A stretch of DNA of 60,385 nucleotides, counting the filler, from Basidiobolus meristosporus CBS 931.73 (taxonomy: Eukaryota; Fungi; Basidiobolomycota), in assembly GCA_002104905.1 (NCBI GenBank). It is 3 parts of 3 records of this genome, joined end to end, with 100 filler letters (N's around TTAATTAATTAA, not from the genome) between each part and the next. Parts side by side here need not be neighbours in the genome. Positions count along the whole stretch, not along the records: positions 24,832 to 49,161 come from MCFE01000950.1; 2 more parts are not named here. The stretch is one strand, 5' to 3'. The notes under the pieces are model-generated. The model searched no databases. It was not told the DNA's origin and saw only the letters and a list, made by a program, of their open reading frames with translations. How positions within the stretch are numbered: the stretch's first letter is position 1; each line of letters starts with the position of its first letter. The translations under genes were made by a program, and so were the position numbers. Shown piece by piece: positions 24,832 to 49,161 of this stretch.

Positions 24832-24896
24832 CAAAAAAGCAAATATATATATATATAGATATAGGTATTCATCGTCCAGAATGAGAAAAAGAGAAG

Positions 24897-24968
24897 TGAG
24901 GAGTGCGTGATTTGAACACGCAACCTTTCGCTCTGGAGGCGAACGCGCTACCGTTGCGCCAACCCCCC
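24897..24968 (-). tRNA. tRNA-Trp(CCA)
   Basis: Cloverleaf; anticodon loop CTCCAGA. Confidence 0.92.
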
Positions 24969-25253
24969 ACTTTCCATAGCTTCCCAAGCTTAGTTTGATT
25001 CGTCTTCAACACCACCTTCATATTTGTACTGACCAAATAAATGGGATTAATTTAGGATATCTGCGATAGCTTGTAAATAGTAAAATAATTTTTTGGTAAC
25101 TCTATATGCACATTCTCCCTCGTATTGGTAAGCACCGCACAACATAAGAATTGGATGACACAAAATATGATTGTACTCTCGAAGTTTCCTCACATACAAT
25201 CGCAAGTCACGTATAAAGCAAATTAATGTTAAAAAGCGCTATAAATCAAGCAT

Positions 25254-25327
25254 GTCTTCGTGGTGTAGTTGGTTATCACGTCTGTCTAACACACAGACGG
25301 TCCTCGGTTCGAATCCGAGCGAAGACA
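25254..25327 (+). tRNA. tRNA-Val(AAC)
   Basis: Acceptor GTCTTCG/CGAAGAC; loop CTAACAC; GGTTCGAATCC B-box. Confidence 0.95.
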
Positions 25328-25724
25328 TCTCTTTTATCTCGCTAGCTATTTCATTTTGATGGTCTATAGTTTAATTGGAGTAAGTGCATAGATAAAAGAC
25401 ATGGTACGAACATAGTGTACAAATGAGTGTGGTCTGACCAAGGAGCAGCCTCGGTAACTTACCAACTAATAGGACCGACATTTAGTGCGTGAATGCAGTA
25501 TAGATAGTTACCAGAGTACACTCATCATGTGTACAATACACGAGTTTACATTCATACTTGTTGCCTCATTCTCGATAGTAAATATAGACTCGTAGCATCT
25601 ACAAGAGAGTTAAAATAAAGACGTTCATTCTAAAATGGGTCACAAAATGAGATAGATGTGACTCAGATGGTAGAGCATAGCATTGGGATCGATGTCTGCA
25701 GTCTCGCCTCCCGCGGGCACAAAA

Positions 25725-25796
25725 TGGAGGACCTGGGTATCGATCCAGTGCCTCTCGCATGCTAAGCGAGCGCTCTACCATCTGAGCTAGACCCCC
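25725..25796 (-). tRNA. tRNA-Ala(AGC), 1-nt deletion in T stem (possible sequencing error)
   Basis: Loop TTAGCAT; G3:U70 pair; one C missing compared with other copies. Confidence 0.8.
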
Positions 25797-26169
25797 AAAT
25801 ATGTGAATATTTGGAGATACACATCTATCTCATTTTGTGACCCATTTTAGAAATGAACGTCTTTATATTTACCTGCCCGCTTCTCTACTCTCTTGTAGAT
25901 GCTACGAGTCTATATTTACTATCGAGAATGAGGCAACAAGTATGAATGTAAACTCGTGTATTGTACACATGATGAGTGTACTCTGGTAACTATCTATACT
26001 GCATTCACGCACTAAATGTCGGTCCTATTAGTTGGTAAGTTACCGAGGCTGCTCCTTGGTCAGACCACACTCATTTGTACACTATGTTCGTACCATGTCT
26101 TTTATCTATGCACTTACTCCAATTAAACTATAGACCATCAAAATGAAATAGCTAGCGAGATAAAAGAGA

Positions 26170-26243
26170 TGTCTTCGCTCGGATTCGAACCGAGGACCGT
26201 CTGTGTGTTAGACAGACGTGATAACCAACTACACCACGAAGAC
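26170..26243 (-). tRNA. tRNA-Val(AAC)
   Basis: Array copy; loop CTAACAC. Confidence 0.95.
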
Positions 26244-26528
26244 ATGCTTGATTTATAGCGCTTTTTAACATTAATTTGCTTTATACGTGACTTGCGATTG
26301 TATGTGAGGAAACTTCGAGAGTACAATCATATTTTGTGTCATCCAATTCTTATGTTGTGCGGTGCTTACCAATACGAGGGAGAATGTGCATATAGAGTTA
26401 CCAAAAAATTATTTTACTATTTACAAGCTATCGCAGATATCCTAAATTAATCCCATTTATTTGGTCAGTACAAATATGAAGGTGGTGTTGAAGACGAATC
26501 AAACTAAGCTTGGGAAGCTATGGAAAGT

Positions 26529-26600
26529 GGGGGGTTGGCGCAACGGTAGCGCGTTCGCCTCCAGAGCGAAAGGTTGCGTGTTCAAATCACGCACTCCTCA
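26529..26600 (+). tRNA. tRNA-Trp(CCA)
   Basis: Loop CTCCAGA; T-run terminator downstream. Confidence 0.93.
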
Positions 26601-26795
26601 CTTCTCTTTTTCTCATTCTGGACGATGAATACCTATATCTATATATATATATATATTTGCTTTTTTGATTGCACCTGTGTTATGTGGAACGTCTCTATTT
26701 TGCACTATCCTACTGTGGCAATCAAGCTTTTGTTGCCCGAGTTATCTTTTTGATGGCATGAGTTATATTACATTCAAGATGGAAATCTCTCGAAA

Positions 26796-26869
26796 GCTCG
26801 CATAGCTCAGTTGGTTAGAGCGTGGTGCTAATAACGCCAAGGTCGCAGGTTCGACCCCTGCTGTGAGCA
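26796..26869 (+). tRNA. tRNA-Ile(AAT)
   Basis: Acceptor GCTCGCA/TGTGAGC; loop CTAATAA. Confidence 0.95.
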
Positions 26870-27192
26870 TTATCTTTTATCCTTTATTATTGATCTTTTT
26901 GTGTATCAGCTAAAGATTCCCTAGCATTGTGTGGACTATTGTTGCTTAAGTGGTCACAAGTTTAATATTCGGGTGGTCCCAATGTTGTGCTTATGATGTT
27001 ATATGCGCACCCAGTCACTCCCTAACCCAAATCCAGTATATAAAAATATAAGCACCTATACCCTGATTGCAAGGCATTTCACGAAATACGTATTTATGCT
27101 TGTAGTATTGTAAATGTACATGCCAACGCATGAGGCTTTACTTTGCCAACAGAGTACTCTTGTTGTATAATCTTTGTATCTTCACAACCAAT

Positions 27193-27264
27193 TCTCAGAT
27201 AGTATAGTGGTAAGTATCCCCGCCTGTCACGCGGGAGACCCGGGTTCAATTCCCGGTCTGAGAG
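27193..27264 (+). tRNA. tRNA-Asp(GTC)
   Basis: Acceptor TCTCAGA/TCTGAGA; loop CTGTCAC; long T-run terminator. Confidence 0.95.
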
Positions 27265-27572
27265 CTTTTTTTTGGCATTAATTCTCGACACAGAAAATAT
27301 GTGATCACCAGTTTGGACTATCGGGTGTCCCGTTGATATTTTTGATAGGCCCTTTTTGATTTGGTGACATAACCATTAAAAAGTTTCCTGTATTCTGCTT
27401 GGCATGTCATAGATGTAAGGATATTTATCCGTGTTTGAGCTCTAGTTTGTGCCTACATAGAATCAATGACACATTCACCATGTTCTGCGAAGCAAAATAA
27501 TATTGATATTCTACTTGGCGTTATCATTATTGTGTGCTTTTTGTAAAGAAAGTGGTTTCTTCTTGCTGAAAT

Positions 27573-27645
27573 GGGCGTATGGCCAAATGGATAAGGCGCC
27601 TGACTACGGATCAGGAGATTCCAGGTTCGATCCCTGGTATGCTCG
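27573..27645 (+). tRNA. tRNA-Arg(ACG)
   Basis: Acceptor GGGCGTA/TATGCTC; loop CTACGGA. Confidence 0.95.
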
Positions 27646-27972
27646 TTCTTTTTTGCCAATCCTTGATCGATTGCCCAAGGGTTTCTGCTTCATTTTTGCG
27701 CTAACCATGATTGCCGTAAGAGTATTGAGGAAGCTGTAGAGTACAATCTCAATAGAACGCATATATTCATTGACATGGTATCATCATTGCACCGCGCTAA
27801 CGGGAATAGTGTTTGCGTATGTTTATTAAACATATATCAGGGAAACGTGTAAGACAGCATAGCTTTTGAAAGTAGAACATTGTTAATAAACGCCTTGCTC
27901 ATCTACAAAAGTTTATTTCCCTCGTTATTAGTTGATAAACATACTATCAAGCTCACCTTTAAGCTGTCTATA

Positions 27973-28043
27973 GCATACTTGGTTTAGTGGTATAATTACC
28001 GCCTGCCACGCGGTAGACCGGGGTTCGATTCCCCGAGTATGCA
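27973..28043 (+). tRNA. tRNA-Gly(GCC)
   Basis: Acceptor GCATACT/AGTATGC; loop CTGCCAC. Confidence 0.95.
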
Positions 28044-28707
28044 TTTTGACAACCTTTTATGATTTCCACTCTACAATAAAGTGGCACACTCAGTACAATC
28101 CCTCAATTTGCCGCTACAATCAACTTCCAAATTGGTCATGTGTGCTGTGGCATTTAATATCTTTATTCAAATTGGCTTTGTGGTTTCCTCTTTTACTAGC
28201 CACTATATTCCACCTCTTAACACTTTCCCAGTAAAATGGGTTTGCTGGCTAGCGTATTAGCACATTGTCTTCAGCTCCGCCCCAGTCTAGGGTTCCGGAA
28301 AACATATACTTTTAGGCTGGACACGGGTGGAAATTTTCGGCTACGATTTTCTAAAATTTATGCATAACCGGCTTCCACCTCTGGCGCTTAGGTATTACCT
28401 AAATCATATCCACACCACGGAGTCGAACCTGTTCTTTTTGCGCTGCATCTAATCAACAAGGCCAACATCACTGGAAACCCTAAGCTAGATTAATTTGCCC
28501 ACCCTACATCAAGAATGAATTGAAGTGAACCGTAAGAAGGCCTGAAGCACTCCATGATTGTATAAAGATATACGTTGCCATACAAGATGCTTTGGTTGGT
28601 GATGGTGCTACTTGTCAAGTGCGCTGCGCTCTAAAATCTATCATACGGGGTTGAACTAGAGTTTCTTGAAATACAAATTAGGTTCATGTGCGTAAACCCA
28701 TAATAAT

Positions 28708-28780
28708 GCCTCCTTGGCTCAGTTGGCAGAGCGTCTGCCTAGTAAGCAGAAGGTCGCTGGTTCGATTCCGGCAGAAGGCA
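28708..28780 (+). tRNA. tRNA-Thr(AGT)
   Basis: Loop CTAGTAA; one C-A mismatch in the acceptor stem. Confidence 0.93.
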
Positions 28781-29400
28781 TTTTTACATCTTATATTACC
28801 TCAGAGAGATGTACCATTTTGCACTGGACCTACTAAAGAAAGCTTTCAGAGCGTGGCCAGCTTTACTTCATCCAGCCTCGGTTTTAATGATTATTTGTTC
28901 GAACGCCTTTTGGAGATGGTTTTTTTTTTGCAAAAGTAGTAATATCGGAGATCAAATTTGACAAGTATTACAGGGTCCGCATGATGGTATGTTGGCAGAT
29001 AGATATAAGTATAATGCATTAGTAAGATAACAAATTAAGTGTTATGATTTAAATCCTAACTAGTCACTACCGATCACTTGAACACTACTGATCGAACACC
29101 TGGAATTCCACACAGACGATCAATCGCACTCAGTGATACACACGTTATTTAATACATCTTGAACCCTCCTTTTGGAAGCTTGCCCTACGTTATCGGAAGC
29201 TCTCCCTCCGAGGCTATCTCTATATAAACTCCTTTGAACACTATCAATAAAGCATCAACCTTTTACCGGTTCATCAACTATTCAGATAACCTCTCTGATT
29301 CGTATTGGACATCCTCCGGTCCTCCTCCGCTTGCCCTCGATTCATAACATTGGTAGCAGCGAACCTCCGATCTCCAAAAAACAAAAACCTCCGTACCTCC

Positions 29401-29580
29401 CAGAAACTTTTCCAATCTCTCAGAAACTCTTCCGATCTCCCAGAAACTTTTCCAATCTCTCAGAAACTCTTCCGATCTCCCAGAAACTTTTCCAATCTCT
29501 CAGAAACTCTTCCGATCTCCCAGAAACTCTTCCGATCTCCCAGAAACTCTTCCGATCTCCCAGATATTCTTCCAATTGTC
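29401..29580 (+). repeat. 20-bp tandem repeats in the gypsy-B 5' leader
   Basis: Eight units of CAGAAACTTTTCCAATCTCT or CAGAAACTCTTCCGATCTCC plus a degenerate unit. Confidence 0.9.
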
Positions 29581-29746
29581 CAGAGATACCCTCCGTACCT
29601 GCCCGAGACCCTCCCAACCTCCCAGAGAAACCCTCCGTTTCACTCAAAAAAAGAAAAAAAACAGTACCCAGTCAATTCTGCCAGAGAACCAGCCCCCTTG
29701 GTAAACACACCCGCCTACCGCAAATCAAACAATACCCAAAAACAAA

Positions 29747-32700
29747 ATGAGTGAAGAAAAGCCAAAATTTAGCTCTTCAGAAGAAATGTTGGCCTATATT
29801 GAGAGTCTTGAACAACAAGTTGCTGAGTTAGCCGGTCAAGGACAGTCCCACACAACTGAGCCTGCGGCCCTCCCTAGTCTGGACCCAAGAATGGGTAGGC
29901 AGACAGACTTGGACTCTTTACATTTTGTGAACACCCAGAGATCATGGTTTACTGGTCAAGGTATACAGAGAGAGGGTGAAGCCTCATCTGTAAGACCTGC
30001 GGTGCCTCCCAATTCCTTGAATCTTGGAGAAGATGGGCAAGGCTCTCTGGACTTCACAAAACAATATAGAGCAACAAATCTGAAACTTCAGAAACCCAAC
30101 ATCTTTGAAGGCAAAAGACACACTGCCACTCTAGAGACTTGGATATTTGAAGTAGAGCAGTACCTATACTTCTCAGATGACTCTGAAGAAGTCAAAGTAC
30201 ATTATGCCTGTTCACTTTTCAGAAAGGAAGCAACCATGTGGTGGAAACTTCACATTCAAGGAATGAATAGGGGCATCTTTCCACCCATAGCCTCCTGGGC
30301 TGACTTTGTTAAAGCATTGAGAAAGAGGTTTACACCTATCAATGCTGATAGAATGGCAAGAGAAAAACTGTCCAAACTCTTTCAAGCCAAGTCTGTTCAA
30401 GAGTACAATGAGCAGTTTAACTTGCTTAGTATGGAAATTCAAAACATGCCTGATACTGAACTACTTGAGCAATACCTAAGAGGCCTGAAATCCAACACTA
30501 GATGGGAAATTGAATACAAAGACCCCAAAACCCTAGTAGAGGCTATGGAACTGGCAGAAAGATATGATGCCATACACTTCAGAAGGGCTGTCAACCACAG
30601 AATTGGTCACTCAAGAACTACTACAGGCCTCAAAGCCAATAACCACATACCTATTGGTAGTCAACCAATCACTGAACAAGGTGCACACTACCCCCACACA
30701 CTGGAGCCTATGGACCTAGATGTTATGCAGAGCACACCAAGACCTTCTAAAGAGGAATGCTTCAAGCTTGGACTATGCTTTTACTGCAAGGAACAGGGTC
30801 ATAAAGTCAATGAATGCCCAAAGAGGCCATTACAAAGAGTATTCCAACTCTCCACTAAGGAGGAGGAGCACACAATCAGCCTTGTTAAGGAGTATCAGAG
30901 GACTCAGAGCTTATATACTACCCCAAAGATGCTGAAACTCCCAGGGATTCTCAACAACAACCAATGTGTCTCTGTACTCATTGACAGTGGAGCAACTGAT
31001 GTCTACATTTCAAAAGATGTAGCTGATCAGATGAAGCTACAAACAATCCCTTGCCCCCCAATTCACATCCTCTGTGCCACCAAGGAATCAATTATAGTGA
31101 ACAGCAGGACTGAACCCTTGACTTTACAAATCAGGGACTTCCAAGACACCATTTCCCCAATTATCATACCCCAAGCCAACTTTGAAATCAATGTGGGACA
31201 AACTTGGCTAAGAAAGCACAATCCTGACATAAACTGGCAGACTCAGGAAGTTGTAATCAACAAGGATGATGCAAAATATCATCTGTCACCCAAACCAACC
31301 CTGGACAAAGGCAATGCACCAGAACACACCATATCAAAGAAACAGTTTGCCCACTCTATCAGACAGAATCCCAAACTGTTGCACATGATAGCCTTTGCCA
31401 AAATCCAAGAGACCACAGAAGTGACAAATGACAGGCTCAAGACCTTGTTAGCAGAGTTTCAAGAGGTTTTTCCCAAGGAAATCCCTGCACTACCCCCAAG
31501 CAGAGAGATTGACCATGCCATAGAAGTAACAGATGATAAACCAAGAAACAGAGCCCCATATAAGTTCTCCCCAAAGGAAATGGAGACTTTGAAGGAAACA
31601 TTGAAGGACTACCTGGCTAAAGGCTGGATAAAACCCAGTAAATCACCATGGGGAGCTCCAGTACTCTTTGCTCCAAAGAAGGATGGGAAGCTACGGTTCT
31701 GTGTGGACTACAGGGCCCTAAATGCAATCACTGTCAGAAATTCCTACCCATTACCAAGAATTGATGCCCTCTTTGACCAACTGGGGAAGGCAAAGATATT
31801 CTCTAAAATAGACCTGGCATCTGGATATCACCAAATCAGAATTAAGCCTGAAGACACCTCTAAGACAGCATTCAACACAAGATATGGTCATTATGAGTTT
31901 GTTGTGATGAGCTTTGGCCTGACTAATGCCCCAGCAACATTTCAGACACTCATGAATAGCATCCTGGAACCATATTTAGAGAAATTTGTCCTGGTCTACT
32001 TAGATGACATTCTGATCTATAGTACCAGCATGGATGACCACATGAAGCACTTGAAGACAGTACTGGCTATACTAAAAAAGCACAAGCTATATGCACAACT
32101 TCCTAAGTGTGAATTCCTCACCAGATCAGTTGAATACCTTGGTCACATAATCTCAGATAAAGGACTACACATGGATCCAGCCAAGATAGATGCTATCCAG
32201 AAATGGGAAGCCCCAAAGTCACTCACTGAAATGAGATCCTTCCTGGGACTTGCATCATATTACAGAAGATTCATCAGGGACTTTGCAACTATTGCAGCCC
32301 CCCTTACAGACTTGACCAAAAAAGAGAAAGACTATATATGGACCCCAAACTGTGAGACAGCTTTCCTAACTCTGAAAGAAAAGCTATGCCAAACCCCTGT
32401 GCTTCAGTTGCCTGATTTCTCAGAACCTTTCTGTGTATACACTGATGCTTCAGATCTAGCTGTTGGAGGGGTACTGACTCAAAAAGAACACCCGGTTGCT
32501 TATGAGTCCAAAAAGCTATCAGTAACTGAACAAAACTACCCAGTCCATGAAAAAGAACTCTATGCCATACTACATTGTCTGAGAGTGTGGAGATGCTACT
32601 TGGAGGGCAAACACTTTGTGGTATATACAGATCATGCATCCCTAAGATACATTCACACCCAGAAGCTATTATCCAGAAGAATAACTAGATGGATTGAAGA

Positions 32701-34096
32701 ACTACAACAATTTGATTTTAAAATCCACTACCTCCCTGGGCCAAAGAATACAGTTGCTGATGCACTCTCAAGGCAACATATATCAATGGTAGATCATGAG
32801 TTGGACTGGCCAGAATACATGCCAGAGTACTTGGCAAGTCAGACAATGCCAGAAGATTTATCACAGGAAGTAAGGGTCAAGATTAAGAAAGAAGCAGAGA
32901 ATTTCTCATATGGTGAAGACGAGGTACTTTACAGACACATGGAAGAAATAGGGCCTGTACCATATATTCCATTTGTATACAGAGGTGACATGATAATCAA
33001 GAATCATAAAGCCTTTGGACATCTGGGCATCCAAGGAACTTATGAAATAACTAAAAGGAGAGCCTGGTGGCCTAAACTCAAACAATTTATAGCTGAGACC
33101 CTCAAGACCTGCCCTGAGTGCCAGCTGGCTAGACCATACAACAAGGAACATGCCCCATTAGAACCACTGACTCCAGTTCCAGCATTCTACAGATGGGGAA
33201 TTGACTTCATTGGAATATTGCCTGAAACTTCAAGAGGGAACAAGTGGATCATAACTGCAATTGACCATACCACTAAGTGGTGTATAGCAAAAGCCATGCC
33301 AGCAGCTACTGCAAAAAATGTTGCAAAATTCCTTTACCTGGAAATCTTTATGCAGTTTGGATGCCCAGGTGAAATTCTGTCTGACAGAGGAGCAAACTTT
33401 TTGGAACAAACCTTGAAAGAATACCTTCAGATAATGGGGGTTAGACATTTGAAGACATCAGCATACCACCCTAGAACAAATGGGGTCACAGAGAGGTTCA
33501 ATGGACTCTTTGGGAAGATGCTGACTACTTATGTCAAAGGAGCCAAACATAAGTGGGATGAATTTGTACATCAAGCACTCTTTGCCTGTCGTATTAGAGT
33601 CCATTCAGCAACACAAAAGTCCCCCTTCTACCTAGTGTATGGTACACATCCAAGAATCCCAGGTGATACCTTACCACCATACATCTGGGACTTAAAGAAC
33701 CAAAAAGACTTGGCAGAATTCAGAACAAGGGAACTGGAAGAATTAGGACATGCAAGACATGATGCCATCAAGAATTTAAAACGACAAGCAGAGAAGATGA
33801 AAGAACAGTACAACAAAACAGTGGTAACAAAACCCTTAACTTTGGGAAAACTTGTATTAGTCCGAAATGAAAGTAGGCTAAAACTAGAACCACATTGGGT
33901 TGGACCCTTTATTATCACAAGAGAAATGCCCTTCAATACATTTCAACTCGCAGACATGTCAGGTAAAGTAAAGGAGGACCTAGTGCATAGAGACCGACTA
34001 AAGGAAGCACAGCTAAAAAACCCAATGACACCACCAACCAAATACTGGTATTACAAGTCCGATAGACAGGACTCTTCAGGAGAAGAACCTCTTTAA
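29747..34096 (+). CDS. gag-pol: Gypsy-B Gag-Pol polyprotein (1449 aa, single frame)
   Basis: Capsid, [18 protein letters not shown], protease [17 protein letters not shown], RNase H TDASD, integrase HHCC and DDE, GPF motif. Confidence 0.97.
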
Positions 34097-34427
34097 GTGT
34101 GGGAGTATGTTATGATTTAAATCCTAACTAGTCACTACCGATCACTTGAACACTACTGATCGAACACCTGGAATTCCACACAGACGATCAATCGCACTCA
34201 GTGATACACACGTTATTTAATACATCTTGAACCCTCCTTTTGGAAGCTTGCCCTACGTTATCGGAAGCTCTCCCTCCGAGGCTATCTCTATATAAACTCC
34301 TTTGAACACTATCAATAAAGCATCAACCTTTTACCGGTTCATCAACTATTCAGATAACCTCTCTGATTCGTATTGGACATCCTCCGGTCCTCCTCCGCTT
34401 GCCCTCGATTCATAACATAAGTATATT

Positions 34428-34510
34428 CCGAACATAGCTCAGTTGGTAGAGCGGAAGACTGTAGTGTTATAGCAATCTTTAGGTCCCTGGTTCAAATCCG
34501 GGTGTTCGGA
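34428..34510 (+). tRNA. tRNA-Tyr(GTA) with 10-nt intron (34465-34474)
   Basis: Acceptor CCGAACA/TGTTCGG; CTGTAG followed by intron TGTTATAGCA at the canonical 37/38 position. Confidence 0.93.
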
Positions 34511-34650
34511 CTTTTTAATTATTTTGGTAAGCATTACGATATTTTTATTTTCGAAGAGAATCTACTTGTGGAATGAAAATAAATGGGACATACATGTTAA
34601 CTAGTTTGCTACGAGCCAATTCTAAAATGCGTATTCAAAAAGAAAAGGAA

Positions 34651-34724
34651 CGCTCCTGGGTGGGCTTGAACCACCAACCTCCTGATTAACAGTCAGACGC
34701 GCTAGCCAATTGCGCCACAAGAGC
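34651..34724 (-). tRNA. tRNA-Asn(GTT)
   Basis: Acceptor GCTCTTG/CAGGAGC; loop CTGTTAA. Confidence 0.95.
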
Positions 34725-35030
34725 TTCACACTTGGGCATTCTTCACCTAGATTCAAAGCTGTATATTCTTCCGTATAGTATCTGACAAGAAAATTCCTGT
34801 CAATGTTCCACCTCACAGCCATATGCCGGATTTAAGTTACGCGGAGTACACTTTAATGGAAAATGAGTTGAAATGCCACCTTCAGCAAAGCAAGATTCTG
34901 TACTTTTCTGGGTATAAAGAGTATCTTTGGCTTTTCTCGCTTCACTCTAGCACATAATATAGTCAAGGATATTTCACTCCATGTTTCCGTAAGAAACATT
35001 ACAGGTACCTACGCGTGAGTATTAATATAA

Positions 35031-35103
35031 GCCCGGCTAGCTCAATCGGTAGAGCGTGAGACTCTTAATCTCAAGGTTGTGGGTTCGACCCCCACGTTGG
35101 GTG
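35031..35103 (+). tRNA. tRNA-Lys(CTT)
   Basis: GCCCGGCTAGCTC start; loop CTCTTAA. Confidence 0.95.
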
Positions 35104-35207
35104 CACTACTCTTTTTAGATATCCATCGTGGATTGGTTACCTCAAAATATACTTGATAATAGAATCTGGAGTATATGGTATATCAATGGTTGGAGCAACC
35201 TAAGCTT

Positions 35208-37975: not shown

Positions 37976-38047
37976 CTCTCAGACCGGGAATTGAACCCGG
38001 GTCTCCCGCGTGACAGGCGGGGATACTTACCACTATACTATCTGAGA
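37976..38047 (-). tRNA. tRNA-Asp(GTC)
   Basis: Array copy. Confidence 0.95.
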
Positions 38048-38709: not shown

Positions 38710-38994
38710 ACTTTCCATAGCTTCCCAAGCTTAGTTTGATTCGTCTTCAACACCACCTTCATATTTGTACTGACCAAATAAATGGGATTAATTTAGGATA
38801 TCTGCGATAGCTTGTAAATAGTAAAATAATTTTTTGGTAACTCTATATGCACATTCTCCCTCGTATTGGTAAGCACCGCACAACATAAGAATTGGATGAC
38901 ACAAAATATGATTGTACTCTCGAAGTTTCCTCACATACAATCGCAAGTCACGTATAAAGCAAATTAATGTTAAAAAGCGCTATAAATCAAGCAT

Positions 38995-39068
38995 GTCTTC
39001 GTGGTGTAGTTGGTTATCACGTCTGTCTAACACACAGACGGTCCTCGGTTCGAATCCGAGCGAAGACA
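38995..39068 (+). tRNA. tRNA-Val(AAC)
   Basis: Array copy. Confidence 0.95.
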
Positions 39069-39441
39069 TCTCTTTTATCTCGCTAGCTGTTTCATTTTGA
39101 TGGTCTATAGTTTAATTGGAGTAAGTGCATAGATAAAAGACATGGTACGAACATAGTGTACAAATGAGTGTGGTCTGACCAAGGAGCAGCCTCGGTAACT
39201 TACCAACTAATAGGACCGACATTTAGTGCGTGAATGCAGTATAGATAGTTACCAGAGTACACTCATCATGTGTACAATACACGAGTTTACATTCATACTT
39301 GTTGCCTCATTCTCGATAGTAAATATAGACTCGTAGCATCTACAAGAGAGTAGAGAAGCGGGCAGGTAAATATAAAGACGTTCATTTCTAAAATGGGTCA
39401 CAAAATGAGATAGATGTGTATCTCCAAATATTCACATATTT

Positions 39442-39514
39442 GGGGGTCTAGCTCAGATGGTAGAGCGCTCGCTTAGCATGCGAGAGGCACTGGGATCGAT
39501 ACCCAGGTCCTCCA
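39442..39514 (+). tRNA. tRNA-Ala(AGC)
   Basis: Array copy. Confidence 0.95.
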
Positions 39515-39662
39515 TTTTGAACCAAAGCACTGCTTGGGATAACTTTTGGCTACGAACTCGAGGATATTTGGTGCTCGCAAGTAGTAGAGGTCGTCGTATT
39601 GTTATGCGTAGCATGCAAGTTGTAAAACGATGAAGACCAAAATCCATAAAAGTAATAAAAGA

Positions 39663-39734
39663 AGGACGCAGGCGGATTTGAACCACCGACCTATTGATCT
39701 GCAGTCAATTGCTCTACCACTGAGCTATACGTCC
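39663..39734 (-). tRNA. tRNA-Cys(GCA)
   Basis: Array copy. Confidence 0.95.
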
Positions 39735-39838
39735 AAGCTTAGGTTGCTCCAACCATTGATATACCATATACTCCAGATTCTATTATCAAGTATATTTTGA
39801 GGTAACCAATCCACGATGGATATCTAAAAAGAGTAGTG

Positions 39839-39911
39839 CACCCAACGTGGGGGTCGAACCCACAACCTTGAGATTAAGAGTCTCACGCTCTACCGATTGA
39901 GCTAGCCGGGC
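39839..39911 (-). tRNA. tRNA-Lys(CTT)
   Basis: Array copy. Confidence 0.95.
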
Positions 39912-40217
39912 TTATATTAATACTCACGCGTAGGTACCTGTAATGTTTCTTACGGAAACATGGAGTGAAATATCCTTGACTATATTATGTGCTAGAGTGA
40001 AGCGAGAAAAGCCAAAGATACTCTTTATACCCAGAAAAGTACAGAATCTTGCTTTGCTGAAGGTGGCATTTCAACTCATTTTCCATTAAAGTGTACTCCG
40101 CGTAACTTAAATCCGGCATATGGCTGTGAGGTGGAACATTGACAGGAATTTTCTTGTCAGATACTATACGGAAGAATATACAGCTTTGAATCTAGGTGAA
40201 GAATGCCCAAGTGTGAA

Positions 40218-40291
40218 GCTCTTGTGGCGCAATTGGCTAGCGCGTCTGACTGTTAATCAGGAGGTTGGTGGTTCAAGCCCACCCAGGAGCG
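40218..40291 (+). tRNA. tRNA-Asn(GTT)
   Basis: Array copy. Confidence 0.95.
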
Positions 40292-40431
40292 TTCCTTTTC
40301 TTTTTGAATACGCATTTTAGAATTGGCTCGTAGCAAACTAGTTAACATGTATGTCCCATTTATTTTCATTCCACAAGTAGATTCTCTTCGAAAATAAAAA
40401 TATCGTAATGCTTACCAAAATAATTAAAAAG

Positions 40432-40514
40432 TCCGAACACCCGGATTTGAACCAGGGACCTAAAGATTGCTATAACACTACAGTCTTCCGCTCTACCAAC
40501 TGAGCTATGTTCGG
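40432..40514 (-). tRNA. tRNA-Tyr(GTA), intron-containing
   Basis: Array copy. Confidence 0.93.
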
Positions 40515-40788
40515 AATATACTTAATTTTGGGTTTTATCTTACTAAATGCATTATACTTACTATCTATCTGCCCAACATACCATCATGCGGACCCTGTAA
40601 TACTTGTCAAATTTGATCTCCGATATTACTACTTTTGCAAAAAAAAAACCATCTCCAAAAGGCGTTCGAACAAATAATCATTAAAACCGAGGCTGGATGA
40701 AGTAAAGCTGGCCACGCTCTGAAAGGCTTTCTTTAGTAGGTCCAGTGCAAAATGGTACATCTCTCTGAGGTAATATAAGATGTAAAAA

Positions 40789-40861
40789 TGCCTTCTGCCG
40801 GAATCGAACCAGCGACCTTCTGCTTACTAGGCAGACGCTCTGCCAACTGAGCCAAGGAGGC
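40789..40861 (-). tRNA. tRNA-Thr(AGT)
   Basis: Array copy. Confidence 0.93.
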
Positions 40862-41524
40862 ATTATTATGGGTTTACGCACATGAACCTAATTTGTATTT
40901 CAAGAAACTCTAGTTCAACCCTGTCTGATAGATTTTCGAGCGCAGCGCACTTGACAAGTAGCACCATCACCAACCAAAGCATCTTGTATGGCAACGTATA
41001 TCTTTATACAATCATGGAGTGCTTCAGGCCTTCTTACGGTTCACTTCAATTCATTCTTGATGTAGGGTGGGCAAATTAATCTAGCTTAGGTTTCCAGTGA
41101 TGTTGGCCTTGTTGATTAGATGCAGCGCAAAAAGAACAGGTTCGACTCCGTGGTGTGGATATGATTTAGGTAATACCTAAGCGCCAGAGGTGGAAGCCGG
41201 TTATGCATAAATTTTAGAAAATCGTAGCCGAAAATTTCCACCCGTGTCCAGCCTAAAAGTATATGTTTTCCGGAACCCTAGACTGGGGCGGAGCTGAAGA
41301 CAATGTGCTAATACGCTAGCCAGCAAACCCATTTTACTGGGAAAGTGTTAAGAGGTGGAATATAGTGGCTAGTAAAAGAGGAAACCACAAAGCCAATTTG
41401 AATAAAGATATTAAATGCCACAGCACACATGACCAATTTGGAAGTTGATTGTAGCGGCAAATTGAGGGATTGTACTGAGTGTGCCACTTTATTGTAGAGT
41501 GGAAATCATAAAAGGTTGTCAAAA

Positions 41525-41595
41525 TGCATACTCGGGGAATCGAACCCCGGTCTACCGCGTGGCAGGCGGTAATTATACCACTAAACCAAGTATGC
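41525..41595 (-). tRNA. tRNA-Gly(GCC)
   Basis: Array copy. Confidence 0.95.
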
Positions 41596-41921
41596 TATAG
41601 ACAGCTTAAAGGTGAGCTTGATAGTATGTTTATCAATTAATAACGAGGGAAATAAACTTTTGTAGATGAGCAAGGCGTTTATTAACAATGTTCTACTTTC
41701 AAAAGCTATGCTGTCTTACACGTTTCCCTGATATATGTTTAATAAACATACGCAAACACTATTCCCGTTAGCGCGGTGCAATGATGATACCATGTCAATG
41801 AATATATGCGTTCTATTGAGATTGTACTCTACAGCTTCCTCAATACTCTTACGGCAATCATGGTTAGCGCAAAAATGAAGCAGAAACCCTGGGCAATCGA
41901 TCAAGGATTGGCAAAAAAGAA

Positions 41922-41994
41922 CGAGCATACCAGGGATCGAACCTGGAATCTCCTGATCCGTAGTCAGGCGCCTTATCCATTTGGCCATACGCCC
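41922..41994 (-). tRNA. tRNA-Arg(ACG)
   Basis: Array copy. Confidence 0.95.
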
Positions 41995-42302
41995 ATTTCA
42001 GCAAGAAGAAACCACTTTCTTTACAAAAAGCACACAATAATGATAACGCCAAGTAGAATATCAATATTATTTTGCTTCGCAGAACATGGTGAATGTGTCA
42101 TTGATTCTATGTAGGCACAAACTAGAGCTCAAACACGGATAAATATCCTTACATCTATGACATGCCAAGCAGAATACAGGAAACTTTTTAATGGTTATGT
42201 CACCAAGTCAAAAAGGGCCTATCAAAAATATCAACGGGACACCCGATAGTCCAAACTGGTGATCACATATTTTCTGTATCGAGAATTAATGCCAAAAAAA
42301 AG

Positions 42303-42374
42303 CTCTCAGACCGGGAATTGAACCCGGGTCTCCCGCGTGACAGGCGGGGATACTTACCACTATACTATCTGAGA
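42303..42374 (-). tRNA. tRNA-Asp(GTC)
   Basis: Array copy. Confidence 0.95.
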
Positions 42375-42697
42375 ATTGGTTGTGAAGATACAAAGATTAT
42401 ACAACAAGAGTACTCTGTTGGCAAAGTAAAGCCTCATGCGTTGGCATGTACATTTACAATACTACAAGCATAAATACGTATTTCGTGAAATGCCTTGCAA
42501 TCAGGGTATAGGTGCTTATATTTTTATATACTGGATTTGGGTTAGGGAGTGACTGGGTGCGCATATAACATCATAAGCACAACATTGGGACCACCCGAAT
42601 ATTAAACTTGTGACCACTTAAGCAACAATAGTCCACACAATGCTAGGGAATCTTTAGCTGATACACAAAAAGATCAATAATAAAGGATAAAAGATAA

Positions 42698-42771
42698 TGC
42701 TCACAGCAGGGGTCGAACCTGCGACCTTGGCGTTATTAGCACCACGCTCTAACCAACTGAGCTATGCGAGC
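42698..42771 (-). tRNA. tRNA-Ile(AAT)
   Basis: Array copy. Confidence 0.95.
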
Positions 42772-42964
42772 TTTCGAGAGATTTCCATCTTGAATGTAAT
42801 ATAACTCATGCCATCAAAAAGATAACTCGGGCAACAAAAGCTTGATTGCCACAGTAGGATAGTGCAAAATAGAGACGTTCCACATAACACAGGTGCAATC
42901 AAAAAAGCAAATATATATATATATAGATATAGGTATTCATCGTCCAGAATGAGAAAAAGAGAAG

Positions 42965-43036
42965 TGAGGAGTGCGTGATTTGAACACGCAACCTTTCGCT
43001 CTGGAGGCGAACGCGCTACCGTTGCGCCAACCCCCC
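42965..43036 (-). tRNA. tRNA-Trp(CCA)
   Basis: Array copy. Confidence 0.93.
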
Positions 43037-43321
43037 ACTTTCCATAGCTTCCCAAGCTTAGTTTGATTCGTCTTCAACACCACCTTCATATTTGTACTGA
43101 CCAAATAAATGGGATTAATTTAGGATATCTGCGATAGCTTGTAAATAGTAAAATAATTTTTTGGTAACTCTATATGCACATTCTCCCTCGTATTGGTAAG
43201 CACCGCACAACATAAGAATTGGATGACACAAAATATGATTGTACTCTCGAAGTTTCCTCACATACAATCGCAAGTCACGTATAAAGCAAATTAATGTTAA
43301 AAAGCGCTATAAATCAAGCAT

Positions 43322-43395
43322 GTCTTCGTGGTGTAGTTGGTTATCACGTCTGTCTAACACACAGACGGTCCTCGGTTCGAATCCGAGCGAAGACA
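43322..43395 (+). tRNA. tRNA-Val(AAC)
   Basis: Array copy. Confidence 0.95.
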
Positions 43396-43768
43396 TCTCT
43401 TTTATCTCGCTAGCTGTTTGATTTTGATGGTCTATAGTTTAATTGGAGTAAGTGCATAGATAAAAGACATGGTACGAACATAGTGTACAAATGAGTGTGG
43501 TCTGACCAAGGAGCAGCCTCGGTAACTTACCAACTAATAGGACCGACATTTAGTGCGTGAATGCAGTATAGATAGTTACCAGGGTACACTCATCATGTGT
43601 ACAATACACGAGTTTACATTCATACTTGTTGCCTCATTCTCGATAGTAAATATAGACTCGTAGCATCTACAAGAGAGTAGAGAAGCGGGCAGGTAAATAT
43701 AAAGACGTTCATTTCTAAAATGGGTCACAAAATGAGATAGATGTGTATCTCCATATATTCACATATTT

Positions 43769-43841
43769 GGGGGTCTAGCTCAGATGGTAGAGCGCTCGCT
43801 TAGCATGCGAGAGGCACTGGGATCGATACCCAGGTCCTCCA
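43769..43841 (+). tRNA. tRNA-Ala(AGC)
   Basis: Array copy. Confidence 0.95.
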
Positions 43842-43989
43842 TTTTGAACCAAAGCACTGCTTGGGATAACTTTTGGCTACGAACTCGAGGATATTTGGTG
43901 CTCGCAAGTAGTAGAGGTCGTCGTATTGTTATGCGTAGCATGCAAGTTGTAAAACGATGAAGACCAAAATCCATAAAAGTAATAAAAGA

Positions 43990-44061
43990 AGGACGCAGGC
44001 GGATTTGAACCACCGACCTATTGATCTGCAGTCAATTGCTCTACCACTGAGCTATACGTCC
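43990..44061 (-). tRNA. tRNA-Cys(GCA)
   Basis: Array copy. Confidence 0.95.
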
Positions 44062-44165
44062 AAGCTTAGGTTGCTCCAACCATTGATATACCATATACTC
44101 CAGATTCGATTATCAAGTATATTTTGAGGTAACCAATCCACGATGGATATCTAAAAAGAGTAGTG

Positions 44166-44238
44166 CACCCAACGTGGGGGTCGAACCCACAACCTTGAGA
44201 TTAAGAGTCTCACGCTCTACCGATTGAGCTAGCCGGGC
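44166..44238 (-). tRNA. tRNA-Lys(CTT)
   Basis: Array copy. Confidence 0.95.
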
Positions 44239-44544
44239 TTATATTGATACTCACGCGTAGGTACCTGTAATGTTTCTTACGGAAACATGGAGTGAAATAT
44301 CCTTAACTATATTGTGTGCTAGAGTGAAGCGAGAAAAGCCAAAGATACTCTTTATACCCAGAAAAGTACAGAATCTTGCTTTGCTGAAGGTGGCATTTCA
44401 ACTCATTTTCCATTAAAGTGTACTCCGCGTAACTTAAATCCGGCATATGGCTGTGAGGTGGAACATTGACAGGAATTTTCTTGTCAGATACTATACGGAA
44501 GAATATACAGCTTTGAATCTAGGTGAAGAATGCCCAAGTGTGAA

Positions 44545-44618
44545 GCTCTTGTGGCGCAATTGGCTAGCGCGTCTGACTGTTAATCAGGAGGTTGGTGGTT
44601 CAAGCCCACCCAGGAGCG
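44545..44618 (+). tRNA. tRNA-Asn(GTT)
   Basis: Array copy. Confidence 0.95.
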
Positions 44619-44758
44619 TTCCTTTTCTTTTTGAATACGCATTTTAGAATTGGCTCGTAGCAAACTAGTTAACATGTATGTCCCATTTATTTTCATTCCA
44701 CAAGTAGATTCTCTTCGAAAATAAAAATATCGTAATGCTTACCAAAATAATTAAAAAG

Positions 44759-44841
44759 TCCGAACACCCGGATTTGAACCAGGGACCTAAAGATTGCTAT
44801 AACACTACAGTCTTCCGCTCTACCAACTGAGCTATGTTCGG
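44759..44841 (-). tRNA. tRNA-Tyr(GTA), intron-containing
   Basis: Array copy. Confidence 0.93.
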
Positions 44842-45115
44842 AATATACTTAATTTTGGGTTTTATCTTACTAAATGCATTATACTTACTATCTATCTGCC
44901 CAACATACCATCATGCGGACCCTGTAATACTTGTCAAATTTGATCTCCGATATTACTACTTTTGCAAAAAAAAAACCATCTCCAAAAGGCGTTCGAACAA
45001 ATAATCATTAAAACCGAGGCTGGATGAAGTAAAGCTGGCCACGCTCTGAAAGGCTTTCTTTAGTAGGTCCAGTGCAAAATGGTACATCTCTCTGAGGTAA
45101 TATAAGATGTAAAAA

Positions 45116-45188
45116 TGCCTTCTGCCGGAATCGAACCAGCGACCTTCTGCTTACTAGGCAGACGCTCTGCCAACTGAGCCAAGGAGGC
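45116..45188 (-). tRNA. tRNA-Thr(AGT)
   Basis: Array copy. Confidence 0.93.
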
Positions 45189-45852
45189 ATTATTATGGGT
45201 TTACGCACATGAACCTAATTTGTATTTCAAGAAACTCTAGTTCAACCCTGTCTGATAGATTTTCGAGCGCAGCGCACTTGACAAGTAGCACCATCACCAA
45301 CCAAAGCATCTTGTATGGCAACGTATATCTTTATACAATCATGGAGTGCTTCAGGCCTTCTTACGGTTCACTTCAATTCATTCTTGATGTAGGGTGGGCA
45401 AATTAATCTAGCTTAAGGTTTCCAGTGATGTTGGCCTTGTTGATTAGATGCAGCGCAAAAAGAACAGGTTCGACTCCGTGGTGTGGATATGATTTAGGTA
45501 ATACCTAAGCGCCAGAGGTGGAAGCCGGTTATGCATAAATTTTAGAAAATCGTAGCCGAAAATTTCCACCCGTGTCCAGCCTAAAAGTATATGTTTTCCG
45601 GAACCCTAGACTGGGGCGGAGCTGAAGACAATGTGCTAATACGCTAGCCAGCAAACCCATTTTACTGGGAAAGTGTTAAGAGGTGGAATATAGTGGCTAG
45701 TAAAAGAGGAAACCACAAAGCCAATTTGAATAAAGATATTAAATGCCACAGCACACATGACCAATTTGGAAGTTGATTGTAGCGGCAAATTGAGGGATTG
45801 TACTGAGTGTGCCACTTTATTGTAGAGTGGAAATCATAAAAGGTTGTCAAAA

Positions 45853-45923
45853 TGCATACTCGGGGAATCGAACCCCGGTCTACCGCGTGGCAGGCGGTAA
45901 TTATACCACTAAACCAAGTATGC
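45853..45923 (-). tRNA. tRNA-Gly(GCC)
   Basis: Array copy. Confidence 0.95.
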
Positions 45924-46250
45924 TATAGACAGCTTAAAGGTGAGCTTGATAGTATGTTTATCAATTAATAACGAGGGAAATAAACTTTTGTAGATGAGCA
46001 AGGCGTTTATTAACAATGTTCTACTTTCAAAAGCTATGCTGTCTTACACGTTTCCCTGATATATGTTTAATAAACATACGCAAACACTATTCCCGTTAGC
46101 GCGGTGCAATGATGATACCATGTCAATGAATATATGCGTTCTATTGAGATTGTACTCTACAGCTTCCTCAATACTCTTACGGCAATCATGGTTAGCGCAA
46201 AAATGAAGCAGAAACCCCTGGGCAATCGATCAAGGATTGGCAAAAAAGAA

Positions 46251-46323
46251 CGAGCATACCAGGGATCGAACCTGGAATCTCCTGATCCGTAGTCAGGCGC
46301 CTTATCCATTTGGCCATACGCCC
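46251..46323 (-). tRNA. tRNA-Arg(ACG)
   Basis: Array copy. Confidence 0.95.
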
Positions 46324-46631
46324 ATTTCAGCAAGAAGAAACCACTTTCTTTACAAAAAGCACACAATAATGATAACGCCAAGTAGAATATCAATATTATT
46401 TTGCTTCGCAGAACATGGTGAATGTGTCATTGATTCTATGTAGGCACAAACTAGAGCTCAAACACGGATAAATATCCTTACATCTATGACATGCCAAGCA
46501 GAATACAGGAAACTTTTTAATGGTTATGTCACCAAGTCAAAAAGGGCCTATCAAAAATATCAACGGGACACCCGATAGTCCAAACTGGTGATCACATATT
46601 TTCTGTATCGAGAATTAATGCCAAAAAAAAG

Positions 46632-46703
46632 CTCTCAGACCGGGAATTGAACCCGGGTCTCCCGCGTGACAGGCGGGGATACTTACCACTATACTATCTG
46701 AGA
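46632..46703 (-). tRNA. tRNA-Asp(GTC)
   Basis: Array copy. Confidence 0.95.
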
Positions 46704-47026
46704 ATTGGTTGTGAAGATACAAAGATTATACAACAAGAGTACTCTGTTGGCAAAGTAAAGCCTCATGCGTTGGCATGTACATTTACAATACTACAAGCAT
46801 AAATACGTATTTCGTGAAATGCCTTGCAATCAGGGTATAGGTGCTTATATTTTTATATACTGGATTTGGGTTAGGGAGTGACTGGGTGCGCATATAACAT
46901 CATAAGCACAACATTGGGACCACCCGAATATTAAACTTGTGACCACTTAAGCAACAATAGTCCACACAATGCTAGGGAATCTTTAGCTGATACACAAAAA
47001 GATCAATAATAAAGGATAAAAGATAA

Positions 47027-47100
47027 TGCTCACAGCAGGGGTCGAACCTGCGACCTTGGCGTTATTAGCACCACGCTCTAACCAACTGAGCTATGCGAGC
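47027..47100 (-). tRNA. tRNA-Ile(AAT)
   Basis: Array copy. Confidence 0.95.
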
Positions 47101-47293
47101 TTTCGAGAGATTTCCATCTTGAATGTAATATAACTCATGCCATCAAAAAGATAACTCGGGCAACAAAAGCTTGATTGCCACAGTAGGATAGTGCAAAATA
47201 GAGACGTTCCACATAACACAGGTGCAATCAAAAAAGCAAATATATATATATATAGATATAGGTATTCATCGTCCAGAATGAGAAAAAGAGAAG

Positions 47294-47365
47294 TGAGGAG
47301 TGCGTGATTTGAACACGCAACCTTTCGCTCTGGAGGCGAACGCGCTACCGTTGCGCCAACCCCCC
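47294..47365 (-). tRNA. tRNA-Trp(CCA)
   Basis: Array copy. Confidence 0.93.
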
Positions 47366-47650
47366 ACTTTCCATAGCTTCCCAAGCTTAGTTTGATTCGT
47401 CTTCAACACCACCTTCATATTTGTACTGACCAAATAAATGGGATTAATTTAGGATATCTGCGATAGCTTGTAAATAGTAAAATAATTTTTTGGTAACTCT
47501 ATATGCACATTCTCCCTCGTATTGGTAAGCACCGCACAACATAAGAATTGGATGACACAAAATATGATTGTACTCTCGAAGTTTCCTCACATACAATCGC
47601 AAGTCACGTATAAAGCAAATTAATGTTAAAAAGCGCTATAAATCAAGCAT

Positions 47651-47724
47651 GTCTTCGTGGTGTAGTTGGTTATCACGTCTGTCTAACACACAGACGGTCC
47701 TCGGTTCGAATCCGAGCGAAGACA
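47651..47724 (+). tRNA. tRNA-Val(AAC)
   Basis: Array copy. Confidence 0.95.
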
Positions 47725-48097
47725 TCTCTTTTATCTCGCTAGCTGTTTGATTTTGATGGTCTATAGTTTAATTGGAGTAAGTGCATAGATAAAAGACATG
47801 GTACGAACATAGTGTACAAATGAGTGTGGTCTGACCAAGGAGCAGCCTCGGTAACTTACCAACTAATAGGACCGACATTTAGTGCGTGAATGCAGTATAG
47901 ATAGTTACCAGGGTACACTCATCATGTGTACAATACACGAGTTTACATTCATACTTGTTGCCTCATTCTCGATAGTAAATATAGACTCGTAGCATCTACA
48001 AGAGAGTAGAGAAGCGGGCAGGTAAATATAAAGACGTTCATTTCTAAAATGGGTCACAAAATGAGATAGATGTGTATCTCCATATATTCACATATTT

Positions 48098-48170
48098 GGG
48101 GGTCTAGCTCAGATGGTAGAGCGCTCGCTTAGCATGCGAGAGGCACTGGGATCGATACCCAGGTCCTCCA
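48098..48170 (+). tRNA. tRNA-Ala(AGC)
   Basis: Array copy. Confidence 0.95.
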
Positions 48171-48318
48171 TTTTGAACCAAAGCACTGCTTGGGATAACT
48201 TTTGGCTACGAACTCGAGGATATTTGGTGCTCGCAAGTAGTAGAGGTCGTCGTATTGTTATGCGTAGCATGCAAGTTGTAAAACGATGAAGACCAAAATC
48301 CATAAAAGTAATAAAAGA

Positions 48319-48390
48319 AGGACGCAGGCGGATTTGAACCACCGACCTATTGATCTGCAGTCAATTGCTCTACCACTGAGCTATACGTCC
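48319..48390 (-). tRNA. tRNA-Cys(GCA)
   Basis: Array copy. Confidence 0.95.
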
Positions 48391-48494
48391 AAGCTTAGGT
48401 TGCTCCAACCATTGATATACCATATACTCCAGATTCGATTATCAAGTATATTTTGAGGTAACCAATCCACGATGGATATCTAAAAAGAGTAGTG

Positions 48495-48567
48495 CACCCA
48501 ACGTGGGGGTCGAACCCACAACCTTGAGATTAAGAGTCTCACGCTCTACCGATTGAGCTAGCCGGGC
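48495..48567 (-). tRNA. tRNA-Lys(CTT)
   Basis: Array copy. Confidence 0.95.
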
Positions 48568-48873
48568 TTATATTGATACTCACGCGTAGGTACCTGTAAT
48601 GTTTCTTACGGAAACATGGAGTGAAATATCCTTAACTATATTGTGTGCTAGAGTGAAGCGAGAAAAGCCAAAGATACTCTTTATACCCAGAAAAGTACAG
48701 AATCTTGCTTTGCTGAAGGTGGCATTTCAACTCATTTTCCATTAAAGTGTACTCCGCGTAACTTAAATCCGGCATATGGCTGTGAGGTGGAACATTGACA
48801 GGAATTTTCTTGTCAGATACTATACGGAAGAATATACAGCTTTGAATCTAGGTGAAGAATGCCCAAGTGTGAA

Positions 48874-48947
48874 GCTCTTGTGGCGCAATTGGCTAGCGCG
48901 TCTGACTGTTAATCAGGAGGTTGGTGGTTCAAGCCCACCCAGGAGCG
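48874..48947 (+). tRNA. tRNA-Asn(GTT)
   Basis: Array copy. Confidence 0.95.
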
Positions 48948-49087
48948 TTCCTTTTCTTTTTGAATACGCATTTTAGAATTGGCTCGTAGCAAACTAGTTA
49001 ACATGTATGTCCCATTTATTTTCATTCCACAAGTAGATTCTCTTCGAAAATAAAAATATCGTAATGCTTACCAAAATAATTAAAAAG

Positions 49088-49161
49088 TCCGAACACCCGG
49101 ATTTGAACCAGGGACCTAAAGATTGCTATAACACTACAGTCTTCCGCTCTACCAACTGAGC
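49088..49161 (-). tRNA. tRNA-Tyr(GTA), 5' end lost in the gap
   Basis: Array copy truncated by the N-run. Confidence 0.85.

Follow-up and report, generated by a model that had tools for sequence, protein, structure and literature searches.

Transfer RNA (tRNA) genes are taken to be dispersed in most fungi. Nevertheless, arrays of multi-isotype tRNA cassettes are already known from fission yeast, frog and Entamoeba. Here we describe an array of this kind in the fungus Basidiobolus meristosporus CBS 931.73 (assembly GCA_002104905.1), in which a cassette of twelve tRNA genes is repeated and carries an intact Ty3-like retrotransposon, and whose gene order differs from the published ones. It occupies positions 24832-49161, taken from record MCFE01000950.1, of a 60,385-nucleotide stretch of joined sequence that we refer to as the window.

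The telomere-to-telomere assembly of Schizosaccharomyces japonicus contains 34 copies of a 5.6-kb unit that combines 18 tRNA genes with three 5S genes (Etherington et al., 10.1101/2023.09.04.556195). That genome also has 3-kb units, tRNA arrays across all of its centromeres, and, at one end of chromosome 2, a subtelomeric array of 575 kb whose order comprises 15 genes; the text of the paper describes repeats in only part of the spacers (10.1101/2023.09.04.556195). These regions were collapsed or poorly resolved in an earlier short-read assembly, relative to which 2,623 extra tRNA genes were annotated (10.1101/2023.09.04.556195). Ala-AGC, with 0 genes in the earlier assembly, has 80 copies in the long-read one. 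Conserved centromeric clusters of tRNA genes (tDNA) are found in S. octosporus and S. cryophilus. Outside the fungi, 8 tRNA genes share a tandemly repeated 3.18-kb unit in Xenopus laevis (Muller, Clarkson and Galas 1987, as cited in PMC1635290), and Entamoeba units contain 1-5 tRNA genes with microsatellite-like spacers and, in some cases, 5S or small nuclear RNA (snRNA) genes (PMC2652664; 10.64898/2026.07.06.736064). The human tRNA repeat at 1q23.3 has a 7.3-kb unit in 9-43 copies, a number that is unstable (PMC4041453). The novelty implied by the original prediction for this locus, made from the sequence by inspection, is therefore not supported, because the S. japonicus arrays already carry more tRNA genes per unit.

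Anatomy of the tRNA cassette

We consider it likely that the B. meristosporus locus is a genuine nuclear tDNA array, in which a 4.33-kb cassette of twelve RNA polymerase III (Pol III) genes is repeated, homogenised in the manner of ribosomal DNA (rDNA) and used as a landing site by a Ty3-like element. Carrying this interpretation are the anatomy of the unit, the integrity of its genes, the variation between copies and the anatomy of the insertion, all of which can be observed in the piece itself.

The piece is 24,330 bp long, without internal N, and a blastn self-map gave a unit period of 4,327 bp, with 4,329 bp in the adjacent copy. ARAGORN identified 53 complete tRNA genes in 24832-49161, and one more Tyr gene is cut by the piece edge at 49087-49161, making 54 genes distributed over about 5.6 cassette units. 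The predicted unit of ~4.33 kb with twelve isotypes is confirmed by these results, whereas the accompanying figure of 54 copies is correct for genes and wrong for units. According to ARAGORN and Rfam, the cassette contains a single gene for each of 12 isotypes, with zero duplicates: Ala-AGC, Val-AAC, Trp-CCA, Ile-AAT, Asp-GTC, Arg-ACG, Gly-GCC, Thr-AGT, Tyr-GTA, Asn-GTT, Lys-CTT and Cys-GCA. We used the 4,327-bp copy at 40431-44757, defined with ARAGORN, Rfam and blastn, as the reference cassette. Its nine-gene strand is the minus strand of the window, along which the order is Ala(opposite)-Val(opposite)-Trp-Ile-Asp-Arg-Gly-Thr-Tyr-Asn(opposite)-Lys-Cys. ARAGORN thus places nine genes of each unit on one strand and Ala, Val and Asn on the other, just as had been predicted.

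The genes are intact, with cloverleaf folds and standard tRNA sequences. With the Rfam tRNA model (threshold 29 bits), all 12 genes of one unit scored 53-72 bits. None of the genes encodes CCA, five of them (Ala, Val, Ile, Thr and Arg) have A34 anticodons, and the Tyr gene has an intron of ~11 nt in the usual place. Together, these features identify them as nuclear eukaryotic tRNA genes. A run of at least four T lies no more than ~20 nt 3' of the gene in 53 of 53 cases, in agreement with the expectation of a separate T-run for each gene.

tRNA sequence accounts for 21% of the unit. The spacers, 103-662 bp long, consist of unique sequence, and comparing the unit with itself returned only short matching stretches of 22-52 nt. 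Tandem Repeats Finder (TRF) detected no short tandem repeats in the spacers, where only a short (TA)n run was seen by eye. The (TA)n run 3' of Trp (~42910-42930 and equivalent positions) differs in length by one AT unit among copies and is the sole microsatellite-like polymorphism of the unit. An Rfam search at E <= 0.01 found no non-tRNA RNA genes in the unit, 5S genes included; two sub-threshold Plastid-ycf2 matches are antisense to tRNA genes. We found no protein genes in the spacers, where the largest open reading frame (ORF) spans 102 amino acids and the ORFs overlap tRNA genes.

The composition of the cassette follows a pattern. It comprises A34 and G34 tRNAs, which serve codons ending in C or U, together with Lys-CUU and Trp. 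It includes no gene for Leu, Ser, Pro, Phe, His, Gln, Glu or Met, and a complementary cassette is therefore predicted elsewhere in the genome. A metagenome scan for a Cys gene after a Lys gene at the spacing seen here recovered six loci. These were dense tRNA clusters whose anticodons differ from those of the cassette, apparently prokaryotic or viral, and we dismissed them as chance matches.

Variation among copies and inverted junctions

Aligning the copies with blastn showed 99.4-99.95% identity, spacers included. Approximately 14 reliably aligned substitution sites, plus indels, separate at least four unit variants, and the variants are common to subsets of copies in a mosaic pattern. The number of substitutions per kb climbs with distance from the reference copy, from 0 through 2.4 and 3.6 to 4.7. 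None of the ~14 sites falls in a tRNA gene although genes account for 21% of the unit (about p = 0.04), and the complete gene copies are identical with the sole exception of a 1-nt deletion in one Ala gene. The near-identical, unique spacers that had been predicted are borne out by these identities and by the absence of short repeats in the TRF search. The pattern of variants also fits the proposal of rDNA-like concerted evolution, given the confinement of substitutions to spacers and the growth of divergence with copy distance. Unequal crossing-over and gene conversion would be expected to leave such a signature of near-identical spacers, mosaic variants and a gradient with distance.

These differences also bear on whether the repetition is real. 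A repeat can be over-expanded during assembly, with reads from one or two real units strung into a 24-kb contig, and some properties of the piece would suit such an origin: it resembles a small stand-alone repeat contig, one of its ends looks like a palindromic artefact, and the copy at 44758-49161 differs from the reference by 0 substitutions and only two single-base indels. However, a single unit that had been expanded or collapsed would not yield at least four substitution-defined variants along a distance gradient. Moreover, the 5.4-kb retrotransposon is carried by one unit only, so the units must be physically distinct. Over-expansion is therefore very improbable. Given the substitution variants, their mosaic distribution, the gradient and the insertion restricted to one unit, we conclude that, as far as the sequence can tell, at least four distinct units exist and the piece is not one over-expanded unit. 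The original prediction had named the finding of only one or two real units as its refutation.

A further observation comes from contig sets derived from one 2016 sample. When words were sampled from an 8-kb stretch, four small sets each contained 81-85% of them, which is weak evidence compatible with a high-copy repeat and does not amount to a measurement of copy number. The other 16 contig sets contained 5-10% of the sampled words, probably those of conserved tRNA sequence.

Although the locus was predicted to be a tandem array, the orientation of its units is more complicated than a head-to-tail series. The blastn map shows 2.7 units in one direction (37545-49161), two units reversed (25720-37545) and a terminal segment reversed again (24832-25660). 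The period is constant across the 2.7 direct units, and the remaining segments are colinear with the same unit. The tandem description thus stands for the direct units, while two inversions and the retrotransposon break the head-to-tail order.

On the right, the direct tandem unit of 4,329 bp and the first 75 nt of a further unit, ending in the cut Tyr gene, occupy 44758-49161 on the minus strand (99.95% identity by blastn). To the left of the reference lies a partial unit at 37545-40430, also on the minus strand and oriented like the reference, which covers unit positions 1443-4327 at 99.7% identity. This segment is itself a mosaic, with some of its variants also seen in the right-hand copies and others in the inverted copy on the left. 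It begins at the junction that we call J2. Beyond J2, the nine-gene strand becomes the plus strand of the window. A partial unit at 34512-37545 runs from unit position 4327 down to 1299 (99.5% by blastn, with genes placed by ARAGORN). The next unit is the one split by the retrotransposon: its larger part, at 25720-29039 on the plus strand, runs from unit position 3416 down to ~100 at 99.4% identity, and it resumes past the element at 34418-34511. The latter part, also on the plus strand, matches unit positions 94-1 at 100% and comprises a 10-nt leader region and the tRNA-Tyr gene (34428-34511; blastn and ARAGORN). With 4.7 substitutions per kb relative to the reference, the 25720-29039 segment is the most diverged full copy.

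The left end of the piece is formed by junction J1 and a terminal arm. The 829-nt arm (24832-25660, minus strand) covers unit positions 2470-3315, contains Trp and Val, and by blastn is an inverted copy of 25820-26667. J1 itself (25661-25719) is the 59 nt between the two inverted arms. By inspection it contains a shortened, degenerate tRNA-Ala, with pieces of the D-arm, anticodon loop and T-arm recognisable by eye, followed by ~27 nt of unassigned sequence. Between the terminal arm and its inverted partner there are 0 mismatches and 5 indel openings, and the Ala gene adjoining J1 (25724-25797), the one exception to gene identity noted above, has a 1-nt homopolymer deletion in its T-stem. Given arms that differ by indels alone and this homopolymer deletion in the neighbouring Ala gene, we regard J1 as probably technical, a poorly polished palindromic contig end.

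J2 has a different character. At this asymmetric fold-back (37401-37546; blastn map and junction sequence), unit position 1299 is fused to inverted unit position 1443 at 37545/37546, leaving a single-copy loop of 144 nt (37401-37544) and microhomology of at most 1-2 nt. The J2 arms are 3 substitutions apart, and the 5.4-kb insertion is in one arm only; therefore J2 does not represent one molecule read forwards and then backwards. J2 lies within ~550 bp of the centre of the piece.

One could suppose that the array is a plain head-to-tail series in which both junctions are technical chimeras, J1 as a palindromic read end and J2 as a blunt-end ligation or mis-join. We place this at a little under an even chance. 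For J1, it would account for the indel-only arms, the shortened central pseudo-Ala and the homopolymer deletion next to it, and for J2, microhomology this short is compatible with ligation, as is a position so near the middle of the piece. Against it, the asymmetry of J2, with its 144-nt loop, and the differences between its arms argue that no single-molecule palindrome was involved. In addition, fold-back inversions with short loops are a known outcome of breaks in repeat arrays. J2 may thus be either a real fold-back inversion or a chimeric join of two array fragments.

A Ty3-like retrotransposon upstream of tRNA-Tyr

An intact Ty3/gypsy (Metaviridae) long terminal repeat (LTR) retrotransposon of 5,378 bp interrupts one unit between its Thr and Tyr genes; it is located at 29040-34417 on the plus strand and was delimited by repeat search, Pfam, flank inspection and LTR identity. 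The two LTRs, 310 bp each (29040-29349 and 34108-34417), are 100% identical and have TG...CA ends. The primer-binding-like sequence TGGTAGCAGCG begins 2 nt 3' of the 5' LTR; we take it to resemble the primer-binding site for the 3' end of an initiator-type tRNA. The LTR holds no complement of this site that would allow self-priming of the kind known from Tf1 and Tj1. The 5' untranslated region of the element contains, between the primer-binding site and gag, a 20-bp tandem repeat of 8.9 copies (29397-29576) with a super-period of 40 bp. A single ORF (29747-34096, 1,449 amino acids) encodes gag with a Ty3-type capsid, aspartic protease, reverse transcriptase, RNase H and integrase, as assigned with Pfam. 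No second copy of the element and no solo LTR occur in the piece.

The insertion is precisely defined. A 4-bp target duplication, TAAG, flanks the element at 29036-29039 and 34418-34421, and the 3' LTR is followed after 10 nt by the mature 5' end of tRNA-Tyr (34428). Tj1 integrates no more than 12 bp upstream of tRNA genes (PMC4600332). The position of this insertion, the single one seen, fits Pol III targeting of the Ty3/Tj1 type. Judging by its identical LTRs and intact ORF, the insertion appears to be very recent and the element apparently active.

Among proteins of solved structure, the nearest relative is the Gag-Pol of Ty3 from Saccharomyces cerevisiae (PDB 7q5b, E = 7e-142). The public protein collection contained no near-identical polyprotein, and identity to named relatives tops out at about 43-49%. 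The best full-length named relatives, covering ~90% of the query, come from the Mucoromycota, with 43% identity in Calcarisporiella thermophila and ~37% in Mucor saturninus. No Schizosaccharomyces protein was among the best 120 matches to the polyprotein, and a protein atlas search returned generic gag clusters only. The metagenome contig bearing the closest JGI homologue (49%; L007, 1-8174) has retroelement-sized ORFs on both sides and no tRNA gene nearby, a layout resembling tandem or nested copies of the element.

Several points weigh against our interpretation of the locus. The copy number, both inversions and the insertion junctions are all read from the assembly, and the indel-only differences in the arms of J1 resemble sequencing error. 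The case for targeting concerns one insertion, for which the chance expectation is ~4% (12 genes x ~16 positions / 4,327). Finally, no tRNA genes were found within the flanks examined of the nearest homologues of the element, with 40-49% identity (contigs of P0004, P0005 and P0026).

Proposed function and comparison with known arrays

How might such an array work? Each gene would act as an independent Pol III unit with its own T-run terminator and an internal promoter, which we assume from the standard tRNA sequence; transcription of the genes is thus something that we infer. The cassette would be repeated many times, with a high total copy number, and kept near-identical through unequal crossing-over and gene conversion, as in rDNA. 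Because each gene would have its own promoter and terminator, the dosage of the twelve tRNAs would track the number of units, and the cassette could serve as a dosage module in which gain or loss of a unit shifts all twelve jointly. The array would also have served as a landing site, with the Ty3-like element inserted just upstream of tRNA-Tyr, where Ty3 and Tj1 integrate. Since the insertion lies at a position of this type, the tRNA-Tyr gene would have been occupied by a Pol III initiation complex, and the youth of the insertion suggests that this was recent.

Intact genes need not be in use. In Arabidopsis, clustered tDNAs keep their integrity but are silenced epigenetically in most tissues (PMC7544208; PMC12308677), and the B. 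meristosporus array could similarly be a silenced reserve like the Arabidopsis Ser/Tyr tDNA, mostly heterochromatic while dispersed copies supply the cell. We think this improbable. An intact element with identical LTRs, at a site used by elements that depend on the Pol III complex, argues that this Tyr gene was recently occupied, and the lack of substitutions in the genes weakly suggests selection (the 14-site comparison above).

In a bolder version of the interpretation that we favour, the cassette is a dosage-balanced module with one gene per isotype, and its array is one of at least two that complement each other and together provide most of the cytosolic tRNA of a fungus that is not a fission yeast. 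Translational capacity would then be adjusted through the number of units, much as with rDNA, and the array would double as a safe landing pad for a Ty3-like element. This proposal is speculative and, taken as a whole, unlikely. If it were true, overlooked cassette tDNA arrays would recur among fungal genomes, concealed in collapsed repeats.

Regardless of its function, the locus has broader implications. Long-read assemblies are revealing that some lineages have much of their tRNA supply in rDNA-like arrays, and the array described here is a further example, apparently outside the fission yeasts, which opens no new category. Counts of tRNA genes taken from draft genomes may fall badly short of the true number. 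Amplifying a cassette as a whole would be a simple means of balancing tRNA dosage, and such arrays are places where retrotransposons that target Pol III genes naturally accumulate. The clean, recent and intact Ty3-like element at a Ty3-like site provides a directly testable case.

The chromosomal location of the array was predicted to be beside a TTAGGG end, with both array ends in gaps. Neither claim is supported: the TTAGGG repeats lie on an unrelated piece that was joined artificially, 24832-49161 contains no telomeric repeat, and both borders are runs of 44 N and stop-codon linkers that were likewise added artificially. A centromeric or pericentromeric domain of tDNA and retrotransposons, as in Schizosaccharomyces, is a different proposal, under which the array would have a role in chromatin, as a boundary or heterochromatin platform, as much as in tRNA supply. 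S. japonicus centromeres are filled by tRNA arrays and tRNA-targeting Ty3/gypsy elements, the D, V, A, I and R tDNA clusters are centromere-specific in S. octosporus and S. cryophilus, and the B. meristosporus piece has an R-D-I-W-V-A block together with a Ty3-like element. Still, we rate a centromeric location as rather unlikely. The gene order is unlike all published fission-yeast orders, and the closest named full-length relatives of the element belong to the Mucoromycota rather than to fission yeasts. The Arg-Asp-Ile-Trp-Val-Ala block at 41921-43840 holds all five isotypes of the 'DVAIR' centromeric cluster known from S. octosporus and S. cryophilus, and has Val next to Ala as that cluster does. 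Its order is different, and this post-hoc resemblance is possibly due to chance.

The array that we describe can be set beside each of the known systems. Like the human 1q23.3 repeat, it has a kb-scale repeated unit with tRNA genes, but tRNA makes up less than 6% of the human unit, which is GC-rich and binds CTCF, compared to 21% here. Entamoeba-type arrays differ in other ways, as the B. meristosporus unit has 12 genes, unique spacers and no other RNA gene. The Xenopus laevis unit reportedly has genes on both strands and unique spacers. It resembles the B. meristosporus cassette in having several different tRNA genes per unit and head-to-tail repetition, and it differs in belonging to a vertebrate, in its smaller size and different gene set, and in having a copy number derived from hybridisation.

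The retrotransposon invites a similar comparison. Tj1 is 5,003 bp long, with 244-bp LTRs and a gag stop codon, and is self-priming (PMC4600332). In contrast, the B. meristosporus element measures 5,378 bp, with 310-bp LTRs, one fused ORF and no self-priming complement, and its target duplication is 4 bp, compared to 5 bp for Ty3 and Tj1. It nevertheless shares with these elements the Ty3/gypsy domain order and an insertion a few bases upstream of a tRNA gene, inside the 12-bp window of Tj1.

With regard to the S. japonicus arrays, the order Ala-Val-Trp-Ile-Asp-Arg-Gly-Thr-Tyr-Asn-Lys-Cys matches none of those quoted in the text of that paper, the gene content is likewise different, and the cassette, unlike the 5.6-kb unit, is without 5S genes. 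Despite these differences, both are fungal systems in which kb-sized, multi-isotype tRNA cassettes are repeated and interspersed with Ty3/gypsy LTR elements.

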